From assembly GCA_000388065.2 (NCBI GenBank), contig KB932202.1: 46,317 nt of DNA; one strand, given 5' to 3'. A program made the translations under genes and the position numbers. The DNA comes from Fonticula alba ATCC 38817. Taxonomy: Eukaryota; Protista; Nucleariida. Below are positions 3,123 through 32,653 of the stretch, one piece after another; within the stretch, counting starts at the first letter, position 1, and the number at the start of each line of letters is the position of its first letter. Below the pieces are notes generated by a model. That model made no database searches. It saw only the letters and a program-made list of their open reading frames with translations, and was not told where the DNA came from.

Positions 3123-4455
3123 GGAGGCGAGCTGCCCCACACCTCTCGGCTTCCCCGTTGCTCCCCCCCCCCTCTCTCTCTGTCTTTCTCTCTCTCTCTC
3201 CTCTTGCCTCTCTCCTCCCCTCTCTGTGCTATTTGATGGGAGGCCAAGGCACAGGGCGAACCGCCGACGCGTTTGGGGGCTCGCCCAAATCCGCCCCCTG
3301 GTGCGGTGCATCACCAGGGAAAGAGGAGTCTCCCCTCTGTGTCTGTGCGCACGCGCCACCCCCACGCGCGCACACGTACGAACACACACAGACACACACA
3401 CACACACACACNNNNNNNNNNNNNNNNNNNNNNNNNNNNNNNNNNNNNNNNNNNNNNNNNNNNNNNNNNNNNNNNNNNNNNNNNNNNNNNNNNNNNNNNN
3501 NNNNNNNNNNNNNNNNNNNNNNNNNNNNNNNNNNNNNNNNNNNNNNNNNNNNNNNNNNNNNNNNNNNNNNNNNNNNNNNNNNNNNNNNNNNNNNNNNNNN
3601 NNNNNNNNNNNNNNNNNNNNNNNNNNNNNNNNNNNNNNNNNNNNNNNNNNNNNNNNNNNNNNNNNNNNNNNNNNNNNNNNNNNNNNNNNNNNNNNNNNNN
3701 NNNNNNNNNNNNNNNNNNNNNNNNNNNNNNNNNNNNNNNNNNNNNNNNNNNNNNNNNNNNNNNNNNNNNNNNNNNNNNNNNNNNNNNNNNNNNNNNNNNN
3801 NNNNNNNNNNNNNNNNNNNNNNNNNNNNNNNNNNNNNNNNNNNNNNNNNNNNNNNNNNNNNNNNNNNNNNNNNNNNNNNNNNNNNNNNNNNNNNNNNNNN
3901 NNNNNNNNNNNNNNNNNNNNNNNNNNNNNNNNNNNNNNNNNNNNNNNNNNNNNNNNNNNNNNNNNNNNNNNNNNNNNNNNNNNNNNNNNNNNNNNNNNNN
4001 NNNNNNNNNNNNNNNNNNNNNNNNNNNNNNNNNNNNNNNNNNNNNNNNNNNNNNNNNNNNNNNNNNNNNNNNNNGGGCCCCGGCGCCCGGGCCCCCCCCT
4101 CCCCGCCCCTTACTGACTCGAGGCCTCATCCGCCCAGCTTTTCCTCGATGTCCGCCGGTCAGCGAAGACGGCCTTCCGGCAGCCGGGAACACCATTCACG
4201 CGGCCCCGGGCCACCGGCCCCGACCGACCGGCTGGGGACGCATCCCCCGAGCATCCTCTGCTCGGGACGACTCGGTCCCCCGCACGGTCGCCATTGAGTG
4301 CCCGGCCATCGGGCACCTCGCCTGGACGCTCGGTGGCGGAACTCGGCCTCCTTCGCGCTGCGCGCTTTTCCTATCACTTCCTGGTGCCTGACATCTGGGC
4401 CGCGGCTCCTCGGCCGCCGGCCCTGCCGCCGGCTCAGCTTTGCCTGGCCGGGGTG

Positions 4456-5583
4456 ATGGTTCTGCGGCAACTTGCTGGCGTGTCTCCGCGCATTCGCCGG
4501 CTGGCCGGGCTTGTTGGCGGTCCGGGCGGCCCGCCGGGCCTGGGTGACATATTGACCGACGCCCCAGCCGGAGCGCCGGCCACCCCGCCAGCCCCCTGGC
4601 GCACGTCCGGACCTGACCGGTCCTTCTTCCTGCTGGAGGTGGCCGGCGGCGATGGGGCCGGCAAGACCGAGCTTTGTTTGGAGTTTGTGGCCTCGGCCGT
4701 GGCCACTTCAGCGCGGCCCCTCTCGCCGCGTGTGCGGGTCTTCTACTTCGACCTTGACCGGTCACTCAGCCAACGGCGCTTGGCGCATGTTTTGCGCTCT
4801 CGAGCCGCCGGGTCCGCACCCACCGGCCCGCCGGCCGATGTGACCCTCTTCCGGTGCGCTGGCTATCGGCAGACCCTGTGCACGGTGGCTCGGCTGGTCC
4901 GGCGCCTGGTGGCCGACGCCTGTCGGCCGGCCTCCCTGACCACCGGGCCCGATCACCACCTGCTCATCTTCGACTCCATCACCGGACCCCTCTTCTGGGA
5001 GCGGGCCATGGACCCTCGCCTGCCGGCCGGCCTGGCTCCGGTGGCCACCACCGCCGCTGCTCACCCGGCGGCTGTCCCTGCCGCGGCTGTCCCCTCGGCC
5101 GGTGATGCCGCCGCCTCGCTGTCGGAGACCGAGGACCTTCCGCCGACGCCGGCTGGCCAGCCACCCGCCTGGGCATCTCGATTTCCTCCGACCCTGGCTC
5201 GGATGCTGGCCGATCTGTCGGTCGCCGTGCAGGGGCGCCTCCTGGTGCTGGCCACCAAATCCCCGCCAGCCAGCCCCCAGGCCTTCCCGGACCCGATGCC
5301 TGGCCTGGCCGGCCGGTGTCTTGTGTGCCAGGCACCGGCGGCCACCCGGTCGGCCTCGGGCCCGGCCGAGATATACGGCGGCCCGGTGTGTCGAGCATGC
5401 GTGACCTTTGCCCCGCATCAGGAGCATCTGCCCCATGCCTGGGCTCGACAGGTGACCATCCGCTTGCTGGCGGCCGTTGGGCCTCCTCCGGCTGGCGCCC
5501 CGACGGGGCACACCTCGCCCTTCCTGTATCTGCACACGGAACAGGGCGGCCCTGAGGAGGCTGTCGCCTGGCGGATACCCTGA
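4456..5583 (+). CDS. XRCC2: RAD51 paralogue, XRCC2-like RecA-fold ATPase; start codon uncertain (first in-frame ATG 4456, frame open from about 4294)
   Basis: Walker A LLEVAGGDGAGKTEL; VFYFDLDRSLSQRRL; Walker B-like LLIFDSITGPLFW; LVLATK; HLPHAWARQV. Motif order matches XRCC2 as recalled (LEFHGPEGTGKTE, LFIDTD, LLILDSLSAFYW, LVLFATT, YLCKAWQQLV). Confidence 0.75.
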   Translation: MVLRQLAGVSPRIRRLAGLVGGPGGPPGLGDILTDAPAGAPATPPAPWRTSGPDRSFFLLEVAGGDGAGKTELCLEFVASAVATSARPLSPRVRVFYFDLDRSLSQRRLAHVLRSRAAGSAPTGPPADVTLFRCAGYRQTLCTVARLVRRLVADACRPASLTTGPDHHLLIFDSITGPLFWERAMDPRLPAGLAPVATTAAAHPAAVPAAAVPSAGDAAASLSETEDLPPTPAGQPPAWASRFPPTLARMLADLSVAVQGRLLVLATKSPPASPQAFPDPMPGLAGRCLVCQAPAATRSASGPAEIYGGPVCRACVTFAPHQEHLPHAWARQVTIRLLAAVGPPPAGAPTGHTSPFLYLHTEQGGPEEAVAWRIP

Positions 5584-5890: not shown

Positions 5891-8800
5891 CTACTCCGGG
5901 GCCAGGGCCCGCACCGCAATCGACTTCTCCAAATCCGGCGTCGGGAAGCCGGCCAATTGGCCGAGGCCAAGGAGAATCGCCCGGGCCAGGGTCTCGCTAT
6001 CGAGCCCGGGGAAGGCCACATCCAGGTGGAAGGCCCGGGTCGGGGGCGCGCGCAGGGCAGCGAGCGTGTCCAGGATGGTCTGATGTACGGCCGGCAGGGC
6101 GGCCACCACGCCGCGACGCAAGGGACCGCGGAAAATCAGAGCATCCCCGGCCAGGTCAGTCACCCGGCCGCCGAGCTCAGTCAACAACAGGGCCCCGGCC
6201 GCATGGTCCCACGACGGGAGGCTGCCATCGGCGTTGCTGGTGCCGGCGGCGTTGCCGCCCGAGGCCCCGGCCGCCTGGCCGCCAGCCGTGGCTGACGCCG
6301 TCAAATAGCTTGGGTCACGGAAGAGGCAGCACATCTCCAGCAGAGCCACCGACAGGTAGGACCGCCGGGCGCGCGTCCACCGGCCGAGGAGTCGATGCAC
6401 CGCCCGCACAACCTCCGGCGAGCCGAGCCCCCCACTCGGCGAGAGGGCCTCCAACTCCGGGAACCGAGGGATCGTTGTGGCGCCCGGGCCGTCGGCCACA
6501 AAGCCCGGCATCGGGGCCAGCTCGTCGGGGGTCGCACAGCGCCACACAAATGCCCCAGCCCCGGCCAGGGCACTGAAGATGGCTCCGCCACGGAGGTCCA
6601 CCACCAGGGCCACCTTGGGCTGGCCGGTCTGCCGACAGACAAGACTCAGCTCGATGCGCGGCTGCGCGGCCATGCCGATGCCCTCCTCATCGATGGAGTC
6701 CTGCTCGTCGGCATGGCGCTGCTGCTGCTGTGCATGGAGTTGCCGGAAGGCCGCCGCGCCGCCAGCCCGCGCGGCCACGCTGCCAGTGCCGCCGTCACCG
6801 GCCGTAGACAGGTCCCCGGCCGTCGGTAGGAACGGCACACTGGAGAGGGCATTGAGGATCCAAAAGTGGTCCGCGTCGCCGGTCTCCATGTTGCCAAAAC
6901 CGATCCAGTCGTGGACCTCGTCGTCGCTGTGTGCGTGCGCGTGTTTGCATGGTCGACGGGGGGGGACGGAGGAGCGGGAGAGCGAAGAGAAGGGCGAAGG
7001 GGACAGAGGGGGAGCCCAGGGTTAGGGGGATGGGGCGGAGGAAAGCACGGCGGACGGAGCCGAGATGGCGCACCTGGCGGTTTCGAAGTACTCCTGGAGA
7101 AGCTTCAGCTCGGAAATGATGAAACGATTCAACTGCTGGTTGTCGGGCCGACTGCGAGAAGGAGCACATGGGGGGGGGGGGGGACAGATCGAAGGGCGCC
7201 AACAGGAAAAGGAGGACACCGAGCAAGAGAGTGAGTGGCGAGGGGGGACCAGGGAAGGGGAGGGCGGGCGGGCAGACAAATGGGCGGAAAACGCACCGAA
7301 GGAAGAGGGCATCCTCCCGACTGACCACAAGCTCTCCCTTGCCGAATTGCAGAAGGCCATGCTGGATGAAGCCCTGGAAGACAAAGGCCGCCGCACGGGG
7401 CTGAACCCAGGCCGCCCGTGGGGCAAGCGCACTTGATGCATGGTACCGCAGGGCCAGGGTCTGGAGAATGCGATGCGCCCGATCGTGATAACGCTTCAGC
7501 GGGTGAGCCATGTCCAGGCCCACATCATGCGGCTCGGGGACCTGGGCAGCTCGCTCGGCCGCCGTGTAGGAAGTCGGCGGGGCAGGAGGCCCGCCCGAAG
7601 CAGGGGGCACATCGGCCACGGCCGGCGACTCCGGTGCGTCCGGCGACCCGGGCGCATCCGGCGACTGGGGAGTGGCCTCGGCCGGGCCGGGCGTGGACAG
7701 ATCCCCCAGATCCAGATCCAGGAAGTCCAGCGCCATGGCCAGGGCCGAGGTGGCATCCAGGGTGGCCTGGCTGGGGAGGCGCGTGGGGGTCGGGCTGCCA
7801 GGAGCAGCCAGACTGGCAGGGGTGGCGCCGGCGCCGGCATCCCCGGCGACAGCTGGCGTGGCAACCTCGCCCGACAGTGGATCCGGCCCGGGAGGAGGGC
7901 CCCCACGGCGCGATGAAGGAAAGACCACGCCCATTGGGGAGGCGGCTTCGGAGAAGAGTACCCGCCGGGGGAGCGCCGCGGAAGAGGCACCCGAGGGCCC
8001 AGCCGCGTCGGGGCCGCCGGTCGACCCGGCTCCCGGAGACAGGGACTCGGCTGGGCAAGTGACGGATCCGGCACGCTGGCGCCGCGAGGACAGTCGGCTG
8101 CCGGACGGCACGAAGGTGGGGATTGTGTTGCGGATGCGCACCGGCGTCGAGGGAACCCCCCGGTCAGTCAGCGAATCCTGCGAGCCGAGGCCGGAAGTGC
8201 CGGAAGTGCCGGAAGTGCCGGAAGTGCCGGTCTTGGCCGCGGCCTTCACCTGCACCAGGGCGTGGAACTGGGCAAAAAGATCGTCATCCCCATTGCCATC
8301 ATCTCCAAGGCCCAAGTCCAGAAGAGGGTCCACCGGAGGGGGGGACGAGGCGTCGGAGCTGCTGCCGGGCTTGGGACTGGCGACCGCCGGGCTGAAGGCC
8401 GCCTCATCGGCCGGCGAGCATTCAGCCAGGGCGGCCAAGTCGTCACGCAGGGAGATCGTCCGGCTGGCAAGCGGCGCCCCGGAGGACAGGATGCCGCCCA
8501 GCAGCAGCGGCGGCGCGGGGGTCGAGCGCTTCTTGGTGCCGGCCGGGCCGCAGGGGCCGAACTTGCGTCCGGCAGTGGCCCCAAGAGCCGCGGGCACCGG
8601 CACCGGCACCGGCACCGCGCTGCAGCCAGGCGACCCGCCTGTCACCGGGGGACCGGTAGAAAAGAGCGGCTGAGTGGCCAGGCGTGACATGGTCCGTTTG
8701 AAGGCCTTTGAGTGACGCATTAGCTTGGCGGTGGCGGTGCTCCGAGCAGTTGGTCCACTTCGGCTGGCAGCCAGCTCAGTGGCCATGTGCGAGGGTGGGG

Positions 8801-9961
8801 CATCGGCCGAAGGAACGGCCTGCATCCGGAGCCGGGGCTTTGCATTGGGAAGGGGAACCGGGGACCAGTCAGTCGGGGGGCGAAGGGGGTCAAAGACGCG
8901 TGGGCGAGGGAGGGGGTACACCAGACGCACCGCTGACACCGCTGCTGTCGCCGCCGAATGACCAGTGTGCGACAGCATGAAAAGCTCCGACGCCGGGAGA
9001 GCCGGGTCGATGCCAAAATCATCGAGGACAATTTGAATGGCCCAAGACATGTAGTTTCGCCAGAAATCCAGCTCCGAGACACTGATCCCCAGGGAGCGAG
9101 ACAAGGGTGAGACACACATCCCGGCGCATTAAAAGAGGTGAAGGGGGGAGGGGGGAGGGACAAAAGAAGATCGAGAAATGGCAAGGGGCCGGTGGCCGTC
9201 GACAGGGGCGCACCGTGAGGGAACAAAGTGGTTTCGCCACTCGGCAGCCGCCGGGTCAATGTAGAGCAGCTCCTGGGCACAGGCCACATGGAGCCCGGTG
9301 ATGCCGGGGGGCATGGCCGGGGGTGCGTCGGCCGCCGGAGGCGATGCGACGCCCGCGTGGCCGGTGGACCGGGGGGTCGCCCGGGGCTTGTGCACAGCAC
9401 CACGCCGCGGGGTGGTGGGTTCAGTGGCCGGGACCGGGGCCGCGGCCGCAGCCGCGGCAGCGGGCCCCGGCACCGGGTCCTCGCCAAAGGTGAAGACATA
9501 CGTGTCGGTGGGCGGCTCAAGGAAGGTTGTCTCGGCTCGAGACGACTGGCAAGCAGGGCCGCCAAAGGGAGGAAAAAGGGGGGAAGCCAGACGGTGAGGA
9601 GCAGCTCCACGCGAAGAAGACCAAATGCCAGACAGGGGGGGGGGGAGATTGTGGGCGCACGTGGGAGAGATCTCGCAGCGAGAGGATGATGTCGCCACGG
9701 TAGATGGCAATCGTGCGCAGGTAGTCGAGAAATATGGAGAGCATGTCGTCTTTTGGGCCGGGCGGAGACGAGAGCCAGTCAGCCAGGCGGCCCATGCGAG
9801 GGCGGCAGAGAAATAGAGAGGAACCAGCAGGGGATCCGCGGCAGCGGGAGGGAGAAGGGGAGAAAAAAAAAGGGCGAGCCAGGCGTACCCTCATCGAGGA
9901 AGACTGGGGCGGCCGGGCTCGAGGTGCCGCGAGCCCACAAGAGGTTGAGAGCCGTCGACAT
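5891..9961 (-). CDS. BSD-domain (SYAP1-like) protein with long low-complexity linker and C-terminal HAL2/SAL1-like inositol-monophosphatase-fold pseudoenzyme domain, about 1,130 aa. Exons 9961-9889, 9749-9661, 9545-9214, 9081-7297, 7151-7074, 6926-5891
   Basis: ccaccATG at 9961; five GT-AG introns with consistent phases give 3,393 nt. BSD-like AQELLYIDP..RNHFVPSR|VSELDFWRNYM. HAL2-like LVVSREDALFLR|RPDNQQ..S|DDEVHDWIGFG..FWILNALSS..AIFSALAGAGAF..SWDHAAGALLLTELGGRVTDLAGDAL..GVVAA..VHQTIL. Confidence 0.75.
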
Positions 9962-18101: not shown

Positions 18102-20302
18102 TTTCTTCCGAGGCAGGCGGTGCACGGAGGACCGCGGCGCAGGAGCAGGCGCCCAGACGCAAGGCTACCCCCGGGTAGGAAGGGGCTTGAGTGGGCAGCA
18201 AGGCAGGGCGGGGCGGCGTGAGGCGGGGCGAGGCGAGGGGGGAGGGCTCAAAATAAGCAGCGATCGGTGGAGCTGATAGGAAGAAGGTACGGGGCGTTGC
18301 CGGCGCCGGAGATGTGCTTGTCTGGCTGAATACTCCCTCTTGAAACAGTTGTGCCAACCTCGAGGCGGCTCGCGTGCTGACAATGACAGGGGGGCACTAC
18401 CGCGGAAGACGGTGTCTGGGGCTGGACAAATCCTGCCACCGTGCGAAAACGCGATCACACAGGGGTACCGCCCCCCGCCCACCCCCCGGGCTGGGGAGAG
18501 GCGAGCTTCCAGCGGGAAGGGCCCGCCGGGCCAATCAGCCTGTATCTCATCCTTGTCCCGCCCCGTCCTCCCTGCTCGTCGGGGTGAAGGGGCGTGCTGC
18601 TTGGGAGCACACCCGAGGGGCCCCAGGAACACTGGAGGACACAGTTGGCGGGGCCAGATCCGCGAGGCAGATCTCGGATGATCCGCCTCCGCGCGCGCGC
18701 GCACGCACGCACGCACAAAAGCCAACATCTCTCCAGCCATCCGGGCCTGCCGCCAGCCCCACCCTCTGATTGTCGGTGCCGGCCAATTTGCAAGCCCCGC
18801 GGATGGCCCCGGGGCTCGGATCGCCTGCCAAGTAGGGAGATGTTTTCACGTCAACCCAAAATGGCGGGGGTAGCGGGTGCCCCCGACACACCTCGCAGAT
18901 TGGAGGGCGGAGAAAAGGTGCAAAAAAGGACCGCCCATGTCCTGCGGCATGCGATCTCACCACCACCCCCCCCCCCCCCTTTCTCATGCTTGCCAAGCGT
19001 TGTGCTCCGATCGAGGAAACCGGACACCAGGGGGACACCCAGAAGACAACAATAAAAGCCTGGCGTTGCATGTGAAAAAGGCCCCATATAAGGGGCAAGT
19101 CGGGTGACTCCGTGTGGTTGTGGGGAAGGCCACCAGACCTGCTGGCCCAAATCACCTGCTGAGTGCGGACTGCACGTGCCACTTCCCGTGACACGCCTTG
19201 TTCGATTGCATGGCTCCAGGGCCGAATGCGGGGTGTGTGGTGACTGTCGAGCGCCTCGCTATCTCGAGCCCATCATACAGGAGCAGCCCGAGAGGGGGGC
19301 GGGGGGGATACGCCCGTGTGCGGGGAGTTCTTGGATCTGCCCTTGGCCCGAGGTCTGGAGGCCCAAAGGGGGATTCCCTGGCAGGCATCTCCCGAGAGCG
19401 AAGCTCTTTGCAGCTGTGTATCGAAGAGCATCACTGACGCACCGGTCGGACCTACGACCACGCCTGTTCCGAGGCTTCCTCCCGCACGTCCTTCATTTGC
19501 TCCATTTCTTCCCTTCCGCTCGCTTGCTCACTTGTCCCCGGGCCCGAGTTACCTGGCTCTCCCTCTCGAGCGGTGGCATATTCGCCGATTCGGTACGCCC
19601 TCGCCTTTCAGCCCCGGAGAGTGCTCCGTACAAGCGGCAAGTTTCCGGCATGGGCTCCATATGTCCAAGCCTCGCTCCTTTGACGTCAGACCGGATCCGT
19701 GAGNNNNNNNNNNNNNNNNNNNNNNNNNNNNNNNNNNNNNNNNNNNNNNNNNNNNNNNNNNNNNNNNNNNNNNNNNNNNNNNNNNNNNNNNNNNNNNNNN
19801 NNNNNNNNNNNNNNNNNNNNNNNNNNNNNNNNNNNNNNNNNNNNNNNNNNNNNNNNNNNNNNNNNNNNNNNNNNNNNNNNNNNNNNNNNNNNNNNNNNNN
19901 NNNNNNNNNNNNNNNNNNNNNNNNNNNNNNNNNNNNNNNNNNNNNNNNNNNNNNNNNNNNNNNNNNNNNNNNNNNNNNNNNNNNNNNNNNNNNNNNNNNN
20001 NNNNNNNNNNNNNNNNNNNNNNNNNNNNNNNNNNNNNNNNNNNNNNNNNNNNNNNNNNNNNNNNNNNNNNNNNNNNNNNNNNNNNNNNNNNNNNNNNNNN
20101 NNNNNNNNNNNNNNNNNNNNNNNNNNNNNNNNNNNNNNNNNNNNNNNNNNNNNNNNNNNNNNNNNNNNNNNNNNNNNNNNNNNNNNNNGGGGGGGGGGGG
20201 ATCTGTGTCTGAAAGGGGAGGTGGATCGCCAGGTGCGCGTGACTTCCCCATCGCCCCGGGGAAGGAGGGGATGTGCTGGCAGCGCGCTTCCTGCCACAGT
20301 GG

Positions 20303-30387: not shown

Positions 30388-32653
30388 GGCATCCGGCCGT
30401 CCGCCAGCAACATGGTCGGAGTCGGTGATGGTTGCGCTCGGAGGGGGGGAGTGGCAGGGGGGGAAGGGAGACCCTCTGCCTCAGGCTCACAGCCGTGAAC
30501 AGGTGGGGGTGTGGGTGTCGCGCGGGGCGGGAGACCGACACGGGGAAAAGCGGGGAAAGGGGAAAAGGGAAAGTAAGGGGGGGGGGGGACTCGATTTCCT
30601 CCTCCTCCGGCGATCAGGGGCCGCGTGTGCCGATGGATGGGCGGGTGTGCGCGCACGCGCTCCAATGGGTGGGTCGGCGATTGGGGATCGCGGGGCGGTC
30701 AAACGGCCGGGCACAGCGCGACAATCGGAGTGGTGCTCGTCTGGATGGAGAGACGCGGCCGGGGCAGGGGAGGGGGGGGGGGNNNNNNNNNNNNNNNNNN
30801 NNNNNNNNNNNNNNNNNNNNNNNNNNNNNNNNNNNNNNNNNNNNNNNNNNNNNNNNNNNNNNNNNNNNNNNNNNNNNNNNNNGGGGGGCTGGCACAAGCG
30901 GCCGGGAGCGGTGCCGGGGCCGCACGACGGAGCTCCGAGTCTCGGGCGGGGCATACACCTGCGGGGAGTTCGATTGCTGCCCGTGCGGGGACTTGTTCTG
31001 GAAGCGGGAAAAAGTCCATCGGGAGATCGCCCCTACCCCCCCCCCTGGGGGCGGGACTGGGGGGGGGGGGGGGGGGGGGGGCGCGGACGGCAGCCCGGGG
31101 TGGTACCACCCTGGATGCTGGAGCTGGGAGCTGGGCGCGACCAGGACCGATAACAACGGCTCTCACACCGGTACCCCGGGAGAGCAGCCAGCTGCCGAGG
31201 ACAGCCCCGGGGGAGGTGGGGGGGGGGCCGGTCAAGGGGGTCCCGCCGGGGCTCGGCACACCAGCCGGCATACACACGCAGGCTTCCTGACCTCATTCTG
31301 TTACGCCCGGGGCCAGGTTTCGGGCCGGGCGCCGGGGCAGATCGGGCTCGCTCTTCGGATGGGAGGGGGGCATGCTTTCTCATCTGCAACACACCCCCGC
31401 ACACAGGACCCGGCAACGGGGCGGGGGTGGGGGGGGGCGGGGGGGGGGGGCGTGTGACACCTCGATCGGCGTGCGCAGCGGGGGCGGGGGGCGGGGGCGA
31501 ATCGCCCGCTGCCACCGTGGCACAGGGACCCGCGCCTTTGGCCCCGTCTCCTCTGCGATCGATCACCTCCGCCTCGGCAACACCCCGGGCGACGAGCCCG
31601 GCCAAGAGGCAGGCCAGCGTCTGGAGATCTCCCGTCTCGAACGTTCACCCCCCTCCCCCTGCCTTCACTGGGGGCCTAGTTAAATGTTGCTGGCGCCCTG
31701 CCCGCTTCTGCGCGGGCGCGCCCGGACCAGCGAGTGCACATGCTCCGACCCGCGGACACGCCCACACGCCCCCCACGCCCCCCACGCCCACACAGAGCAG
31801 GGGAGAGAGAGAGAGAGAGAGAGGGACGGGCACCAACCAATCACCAGGTGGTGGGTGGGGTTGCTCAGTGTGGAGGCCAGGGAGGCGCGTGTTGCGTGCG
31901 CGCCCCCGGACAAGTGTGCCCTGCGCTCGTGCACTCGCCAGCCCATTAACCGGAAGCCTCGGTCGCCTGTTGCCCGCCTCCAGCCCCGCCCCGGCCCCCG
32001 GCGGGGGCGCCAACGGCCCCGGCGACATGCCCGGCTCGCGTGGCGAACGGCCAAATGAGAGAACGCATCTCTGAGGCCGCAGGCGGTCCTGATTGTCCCC
32101 CCGCCCCCACTGCCCGTCGCCCTTCATCCCCCTCTACACACGCGCCTGGGCATGCGTCCGCTGAATTCCACGCCCCCCCCCCCCGGCGCACGGAGGGTGG
32201 CTGGTATTTTGCCCCCACGCACATGCCCCCCCCCTCTCCCCCTCTCCCCCCTCCCCCGCCCAGGTGACCACTCCGCACAGGTACCAACGGTCGGCGATTT
32301 CGCGGGGCGCCCAATCTCAGATTGGAGGTGCCACCGGATCGGCGGCGATCGGCTCGTTTTGAAAAACCCGGCATCTGGATTGAACAGCCGCGAGTGGCCG
32401 GGGACGCATTGCGAGCCCTTCCCCGCGGAAGCTCGGGGGCCTCCTGCCAGAGAGCGCGCGCGGGGCGCAGGGGCGCAGGGGCGGGGGGGAGGGGGGCGCG
32501 AAGCCCCAGAAGGGGCCCAGCTTGCTTGGGCTCAGGGGGGCGAGGAGGGGGTCCGGGCTGGGCATCCTCGGCGGCGCGAGCAGAGGCGGGCCGGCGCCCG
32601 GAGGAGCGCGCATGTCCATCGACAAGCTCAATAGCTCCCAATACAGTAGCCTA

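Follow-up and report, generated by a model that had tools for sequence, protein, structure and literature searches.

Background

What does a phosphatase-like protein do once the residues that catalyse its reaction are gone, and where does such a protein come from when a BSD-like segment precedes the phosphatase? The question is raised by a gene on the minus strand of a 46,317-nucleotide stretch of DNA from Fonticula alba ATCC 38817 (contig KB932202.1 of assembly GCA_000388065.2), which is referred to below as the window and supplies all coordinates. A preliminary description, made from the letters of the window, read positions 9961 to 5891 as one spliced gene coding for a BSD domain, a long linker and an apparently dead phosphatase of the HAL2/SAL1 type. 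The explanation that we favour, with a probability of about 0.62, is that the protein is a very diverged and catalytically dead member of a family of BSD-HAL2 fusions, surviving in Fonticula as a non-catalytic scaffold.

The HAL2/SAL1 enzymes, which are phosphatases of 3'-phosphoadenosine 5'-phosphate (PAP), control sulfur assimilation, the toxicity of lithium and sodium, and stress signalling in plants, and to our knowledge they have been described as stand-alone enzymes. We know of no pseudoenzyme in the inositol monophosphatase (IMPase)/HAL2 fold and of no described BSD protein that bears an IMPase-fold domain. In this article, we report eukaryotic HAL2-type versions that carry a BSD segment, including one member that lacks the catalytic residues and yet is expressed. 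Should the dead copy be under selection, it would be a pseudoenzyme in a fold for which we know of none, and it would provide a handle on the partner to which the BSD segment ties the phosphatase; a relic, by contrast, would document well how a domain decays in a GC-rich genome that tends to acquire low-complexity inserts.

Results and discussion

Gene structure and transcription

Joining the six pieces proposed in the preliminary description exactly recovers a minus-strand open frame of 3,393 nucleotides (1,130 codons). The five introns predicted between them are all of the GT..AG type and 115–147 nucleotides long, with the donor GTGCG(C/T) in four and GTACGC after exon 1. The RNA data consist of contigs from four small runs of 2012 that cover the locus. 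Their joints (6926|7074, 7151|7297, 9081|9214 and 9545|9661) confirm four of the five predicted introns, among them the intron at 9213–9082 (joint 9081|9214), which interrupts the BSD motif. The joints read CT..AC on the plus strand, i.e., GT..AG on the strand of the gene, and the RNA contigs are therefore spliced transcripts. A single contig (run X4, record 24) unites exons 6, 5 and 4 (6685–6926 / 7074–7151 / 7297–7564), and another (run X1, record 6) ties the linker to both BSD exons (8671–8837 / 8931–9081 / 9214–9320). Depth is unbroken from 5873 to ~9716, and the contigs are colinear through the linker, in agreement with the proposal of one spliced gene, which is expressed.

The coding sequence itself has to be corrected. 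A sixth, in-frame intron at 8930–8838 (93 nucleotides, GTGCGT..AG) had been overlooked and translated as part of the linker. Its joint 8837|8931 is present in three of the four runs (X1, X3 and X4), and with this intron removed the mature coding sequence has 3,300 rather than 3,393 nucleotides and encodes 1,099 amino acids. Stop-free in-frame introns of this kind can go unnoticed inside long open reading frames (ORFs) of the GC-rich F. alba genome.

At the 5' side RNA depth is zero over exon 1 (9961–9889), and exon 1 and intron 1 consequently stay predictions. A second in-frame ATG at 9795–9793 (MGRLADW...), within predicted intron 1, would yield a 1,090-residue protein without exon 1, and RNA depth is too low to decide between it and the ATG at 9961–9959. 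GC content at the three codon positions is 0.71/0.59/0.78 across the frame, compared to 62–69% GC and 71–79% pyrimidine in the introns, which fits a coding frame throughout. RNA contigs also leave the locus reproducibly at 6278, 7842, 7910, 8594, 9257 and 9434, running into unlike letters over a length of 22–61 at 6278 and 175–255 at the other five sites; the loose ends at 8594 and 9434, which fall on GTGCCG and GCN repeats, are probably assembler mis-joins.

Relationship to HAL2-type phosphatases

The translation of exon 6 passes the Pfam threshold for Inositol_P (PF00459; 38.2 bits against a gathering score of 27, E 1.5e-9) with a match confined to profile positions 213–265, the WD..AG region. 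In the PDB, the sequences that this piece matches best are those of SuhB, of inositol monophosphatases and of PAP phosphatases. When 1.84 billion representative sequences were scanned exhaustively with HMMER, there were 57 matches (best E 3.8e-7), nearly all of them to the WD..AG region only.

A hidden Markov model (HMM) built from 33 HAL2-type sequences gives the spliced protein 67.8 bits in two collinear stretches. Within this match, residues 698–780 correspond to model positions 48–128 (21.6 bits), i.e., to the spacer that leads from the EE to the DPIDGT position. The same stretch is matched by phmmer to protein P0031 with 23.3 bits, and an IMPase-like HMM gives no match to it. The distance from Arg722 to Asn780 is 58 residues, where inositol monophosphatases have ~20 between the EE and DPIDGT positions. 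The long HAL2-type spacer is thus present, as is the WDHAAG form of the last motif. The NCBIfam family of the PAP phosphatases, TIGR01330, is still the best NCBIfam match of the exon 6 piece, at 25 bits against a cut-off of 267 that is not reached. The substrate-side HAL2 blocks ESVExGHS and DSQxKY are not detected, the sub-profile of the region from the hairpin to WDHAAG scoring only 0.4 bits, and an HMM of the HAL2 hairpin finds no signal in the Fonticula domain.

Fold prediction is partly in line with the family assignment. An alignment-guided AlphaFold2 (AF2) model of the last 256 residues has a mean predicted local distance difference test score (pLDDT) of 70.9. When this model was compared with the PDB by Foldseek, all 54 matches at E<=0.001 were chains of the IMPase superfamily, with TM-scores of only 0.40–0.46. 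SuhB is among the top matches in both sequence and fold. In the model the hairpin region, spanning the first four ten-residue blocks, has block means of 76–92, and the C-terminal beta-alpha-beta unit also folds confidently. An AF2 model of the entire exon 6 piece with a HAL2 alignment was discarded (pLDDT 54.5, N-terminal half unusable).

Loss of the metal-binding residues

The GEE, DPxDGT and WDxA elements are required for binding of metal and substrate in this superfamily (PMC2080633). In the Fonticula protein the metal-binding Glu of AEE is Arg722. In the QPRAAAF block the Asp of TxAD is Ala699 and the Thr is Arg696. The segment W-x-L-D-P-I reads W-I-L-N-A-L, with the first Asp of DPIDGT replaced by Asn. 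The replaced positions show a conservation of 90% or more across the 33 HAL2 sequences, and WDHAAG is the only metal-site motif kept. The preliminary description had called these losses (S-R-E-D for EE, a missing Asp in PVTVAD, NALSS for DPIDGT, WDHAAG kept), and they are borne out position for position. The sequence S-D-D-E at the junction of exons 5 and 6 was considered as the EE motif and rejected, since profile and pairwise alignments both put EE at S-R-E-D.

The second half of DPIDGT can be aligned in two ways. In alignment A, 'DGT' is the S-S-V that directly follows N-A-L, and a 54-residue low-complexity insert comes after it; in alignment B, which is the choice of MAFFT and gains 12 bits with the HAL2 HMM, 'DGT' is D-G-G at residues 799–801, after an insert of 16 residues. 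Alignment A is preferred on sequence and model grounds, namely because the hairpin with its G-x-G-A-F strand (residues 844–881) aligns to SuhB, fits the IMPase-like HMM (17.2 bits, residues 845–882), aligns with every homologue if the alignment is not anchored at DGT, and folds with the high pLDDT given above. On this alignment the second Asp is most likely replaced by Ser and the Thr by Val. The choice does not affect the main result, as neither alignment retains the Glu, the first Asp, the Thr or the TxAD Asp.

BSD-like segment and related fusion proteins

The motif FVPSR|VSELDFWRNY spans the intron at 9213–9082, and the unspliced pieces give no match to Pfam BSD. With a 54-residue peptide spliced over the RNA-confirmed junction 9214|9081, BSD is the only Pfam family matched. 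The match is stronger with an HMM built from the N-terminal regions of eight BSD-HAL2 fusions, against which residues 140–178 reach 33 bits, compared to at most 1.9 bits in 500 shuffles. The proposed BSD-like segment in the N-terminal part is therefore supported, its Pfam score being sub-threshold (see below). Exons 1 and 2 look similar to the far N-terminus of the fusions by eye only, and HMMER does not support this likeness.

The P/A/S-rich linker, described earlier as about 500 residues long, comes to ~480 and is disordered, with colinear RNA contigs. Over residues 190–650 it consists of 62% P/A/S/G/T and has a net charge of -4. No Pfam family matches it, and a word-indexed search for homologues of the exon 4 ORF found none, not even a self match.

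Other proteins share the architecture. The clearest counterpart is a 499-residue protein of the amoeba Stenamoeba stenopodia (P0022; EukProt EP01102_P008807), with Pfam BSD at 26.8 bits, above the gathering score, Inositol_P at 189.7 bits, TIGR01330 at 387.8 bits (cut-off 267) and all catalytic motifs intact. A search with P0022 uncovered three further distinct fusions, namely P0058, P0059 (from SRR22100204) and P0107 (from JGI 3300016711, a cluster that includes P0176 and P0177). These are transcriptome or metagenome sequences in which both Pfam BSD and Inositol_P are present and every catalytic motif is intact. The preliminary statement that no protein of this architecture has been described holds for the literature: our literature search found no paper in which a bisphosphate nucleotidase or an inositol monophosphatase is linked to BSD.

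In a phmmer comparison with 58 fetched proteins, P0058 and P0022 come out closest to the spliced protein of Fonticula, each with three collinear matches (the BSD segment, the spacer, and the C-terminus into the extension). The C-terminal tail on its own scores 5.0 bits against an HMM of the C-terminal extension, which is not significant (shuffles reach 6.6). The amoebozoan fusions have the same order of parts as the Fonticula protein, i.e., N-terminal region, BSD-like segment, HAL2-type domain and short C-terminal tail. The BSD core VPSR-x-x-EL-x-FWRNY is near-identical, and the HAL2 spacer and WDHAAG are common to all. Fonticula has a homologous BSD-like segment N-terminal to a HAL2-type domain in one splice-linked ORF, as expected of a member of the BSD-HAL2 family. 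There are also differences. The amoebozoan proteins keep PVTIAD, AEE, DPIDGT, ESVExGHS and DSQxKY, whereas Fonticula has lost these motifs; ~20 residues separate the BSD-like segment from the enzyme domain in the former (as seen in P0022), in contrast to the linker of ~480 in the latter; and the amoebozoan fusions begin with MGxxx(S/T), a probable N-myristoylation signal and lipid anchor to judge from the sequence, whereas no such N-myristoyltransferase-type start occurs in Fonticula within 1.5 kb upstream.

The search with P0022 also yielded a set of proteins that lack BSD but have the MGxxx(S/T) start in common with the fusions and are extended at the C-terminus by ~45 conserved residues (P0015, P0060, P0063, P0064, P0066 and P0102; the sources are metagenomes and the amoebae Stenamoeba, Stygamoeba regulata and Vermistella antarctica). 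They are intact HAL2-type PAP phosphatases, of which we found no description. Low-complexity inserts within the HAL2 domain also occur in intact fusions, at residues ~335–385 of P0059 and ~215–250 of P0107. These inserts are lineage-specific, one being rich in Pro/Ala/Ser and the other in Ala/Asp; the HAL2 fold seems to tolerate low-complexity inserts at loops.

Comparison with known systems

Yeast Hal2/Met22 and Arabidopsis SAL1/FRY1, which belong to TIGR01330, have the long spacer from EE to DPIDGT, WDHAAG and probably the IMPase fold in common with the Fonticula protein. They differ in lacking a BSD domain and in being active enzymes that depend on Mg2+ and are sensitive to Li+, whereas the Fonticula domain falls far short of the TIGR01330 cut-off and misses the metal ligands. 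With the BSD proteins TFIIH p62/Tfb1, BSDC1 and SYAP1/SAP47 it probably shares the conserved FW-containing BSD core, at a sub-threshold score. A structural role for an IMPase-fold protein has a precedent in SuhB, which is part of the rRNA antitermination complex as one of its Nus-factor subunits (PDB 6tqn, 9j90). SuhB is bacterial, consists of a single domain and keeps its catalytic residues, and the parallel is limited to non-enzymatic use of the fold.

Function of the Fonticula protein

The reading of the gene as a dead fusion member retained as a scaffold can be laid out as follows. The ancestor would have carried a BSD segment ahead of a HAL2/SAL1-type 3'(2'),5'-bisphosphate nucleotidase, i.e., a PAP phosphatase, as the intact amoebozoan members suggest. 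Replacements in the copy of Fonticula would then have removed the residues that bind the catalytic Mg2+ and activate water, namely the AEE Glu, the two Asp and the Thr of DPIDGT, and the TxAD Asp. The substrate-side blocks would have changed beyond recognition, and insertion of a disordered linker of ~480 residues would have separated the BSD segment from the phosphatase shell. Judged by the chemistry of the family, such a protein would not hydrolyse PAP or inositol phosphates by the family mechanism. If it acts at all, the BSD segment, the linker motifs and the remaining surface of the IMPase fold may bind partners as a scaffold.

Several observations weigh against this explanation. The Pfam BSD match (PF03909) has 20.1 bits (E 6.6e-4) where the gathering score is 24.6, and spans only profile positions 21–45 of 58. 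No single read covers the entire transcript, and the 5' end is predicted. The domain was first described as a complete IMPase fold, and this is only partly shown: the beta-hairpin and the two outer thirds of the domain have profile matches or fold confidently, but the middle third (residues ~885–990) is unalignable, matches no profile and folds with low confidence, which also makes retention of PAP binding unlikely. Neither an orthologue of the dead domain nor a self match was found among the 1.84 billion representatives, so purifying selection is unmeasurable. Phylogeny helps little. The maximum-likelihood tree puts Fonticula on the HAL2 side of a branch with support 100/99, on a branch of its own of 8.5 substitutions per site (median 0.47) that makes the tree uninformative. 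In approximately unbiased (AU) tests a clade with the IMPase-like outgroup is not rejected (p 0.23), and one with the fusion group is weakly disfavoured (p 0.035). As the AU tests fail to fix the place of the protein, the argument for common descent of the fusion comes from the shared architecture and the close agreement of the BSD cores, and the tree does not enter into it. Finally, gene structure, expression, domain homologies and substitutions are observed, and the loss of activity and the scaffold role are something we infer.

A bolder interpretation, which we consider doubtful, is that BSD-tethered PAP phosphatases form an old family present in Amoebozoa and on the fungal side of the opisthokonts, and that the Fonticula protein is the first known pseudoenzyme of the IMPase/HAL2 fold, kept by selection as an adaptor or ligand sensor and not a relic.

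Alternative explanations

The alternative that survives best, although we hold it to be unlikely, is that the phosphatase-like half has become a redundant paralogue on its way to loss, still transcribed and open but functionless. The extreme branch length, the low-complexity inserts in the domain and the missing orthologue are what one would expect of such a relic. Against it, a final exon of 344 codons and correct splicing of all its introns have been maintained, while a random frame at 69% GC would reach a stop about every 50 codons, as estimated from base composition. The last 300 codons are coding-like (GC 0.82–0.85 at the third and 0.48–0.61 at the second position), and the core hairpin and the C-terminal beta-alpha-beta unit fold confidently.

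There is a slim chance that the dead domain is a ligand sensor, as first proposed, which would still bind PAP or inositol phosphates and signal through the BSD domain. The fold shell and WDHAAG are kept and the ancestral fusion partner was a PAP phosphatase, both of which would suit a sensor. We know of no function of BSD as a signal output, and substrate phosphates in the IMPase fold are held largely via metal ions. Three or four of the metal ligands in the motifs of PMC2080633 are gone. The HAL2 blocks from the hairpin to WDHAAG, ESVExGHS and DSQxKY included, have likewise faded to the 0.4 bits noted above.

Production of two separate proteins, i.e., a BSD-plus-linker protein and a phosphatase-like protein made, for example, from Met658 (MAHPLKR) by an internal promoter or internal initiation, appears improbable. 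The lack of a read across the gene and the loose ends of several RNA contigs inside it would allow for such products; however, RNA contigs pass the Met658 codon (7511–7509) to 7564 and 7693 at similar depth, the frame is open through the whole linker, and the amoebozoan relatives hold both parts in one ORF on single transcripts. An active phosphatase with a non-canonical metal site, e.g., at Asp799 of the DGG that alignment B retains, is very improbable, because even this alignment, favoured by MAFFT and by 12 bits with the HAL2 HMM, leaves Glu changed to Arg, the first Asp to Asn, Thr to Gly and the TxAD Asp to Ala, and the hairpin evidence points to alignment A.

Features and setting of the locus

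Table 1. Parts of the Fonticula BSD-HAL2 gene, in the direction of transcription, with window coordinates
Feature	Positions	Strand	Evidence
Exon 1 (predicted), start ATG 9961-9959	9889..9961	-	frame and GTACGC donor only
Exon 2	9661..9749	-	joint 9545|9661 in run X3; 5' boundary predicted
Exon 3: Ala/Pro-rich part and first two thirds of BSD-like segment	9214..9545	-	two RNA joints
BSD-like segment, residues 140-178, interrupted by intron 9213-9082	9042..9290	-	Pfam sub-threshold; fusion HMM 33 bits
Exon 4a: end of BSD segment and start of linker	8931..9081	-	X1 record 6
Disordered linker, ~480 residues (179-657)	7512..9041	-	composition; no Pfam match; no homologue
In-frame intron, 93 nucleotides, GTGCGT..AG	8838..8930	-	joint 8837|8931 in X1, X3, X4
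Exon 4b: linker, N-terminal helices and EE strand of HAL2-like domain	7297..8837	-	X4 record 24
QPRAAAF in place of SPVTxADF	7383..7403	-	phmmer to P0020; HAL2 HMM; conserved-column table
S-R-E-D in place of A-E-E-D	7311..7322	-	phmmer to P0031; HAL2 HMM
Exon 5: part of HAL2-type EE-to-DPIDGT spacer	7074..7151	-	joints 6926|7074, 7151|7297; HAL2 HMM
Exon 6: rest of HAL2-like domain, C-terminal tail, TAG stop 5893-5891	5891..6926	-	Pfam Inositol_P; RNA depth to 5873
NALSSV in place of DPIDGT	6836..6853	-	HAL2 HMM, phmmer; alignment A
Low-complexity insert, 54 residues, after DPIDGT-equivalent position	6662..6823	-	alignments, composition
Beta-hairpin and G-x-G-A-F strand of IMPase core	6548..6661	-	IMPase-like HMM 17.2 bits; SuhB alignment; AF2
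Gly/Ala-rich run, 27 residues, before WDHAAG; insert or degenerate helix	6221..6301	-	alignments, AF2
WDHAAG, sole metal-site motif kept	6194..6211	-	Pfam, PDB sequence matches, HAL2 HMM
C-terminal tail, 52 residues, like amoebozoan extension	5894..6049	-	phmmer to P0022, P0058 reaches residue 1077

Most 1-kb bins of the window have 62–79% GC, and its introns are short, pyrimidine-rich and of the GT..AG type. Bins of low GC content are due to runs of N at assembly gaps (1299–1860, 3412–4074, 19704–20188, 30783–30882 and shorter runs). A convergent neighbour ORF on the plus strand (4294–5583) contains a Walker-A-like GDGAGKT in a context resembling RecA/Rad51 paralogues.

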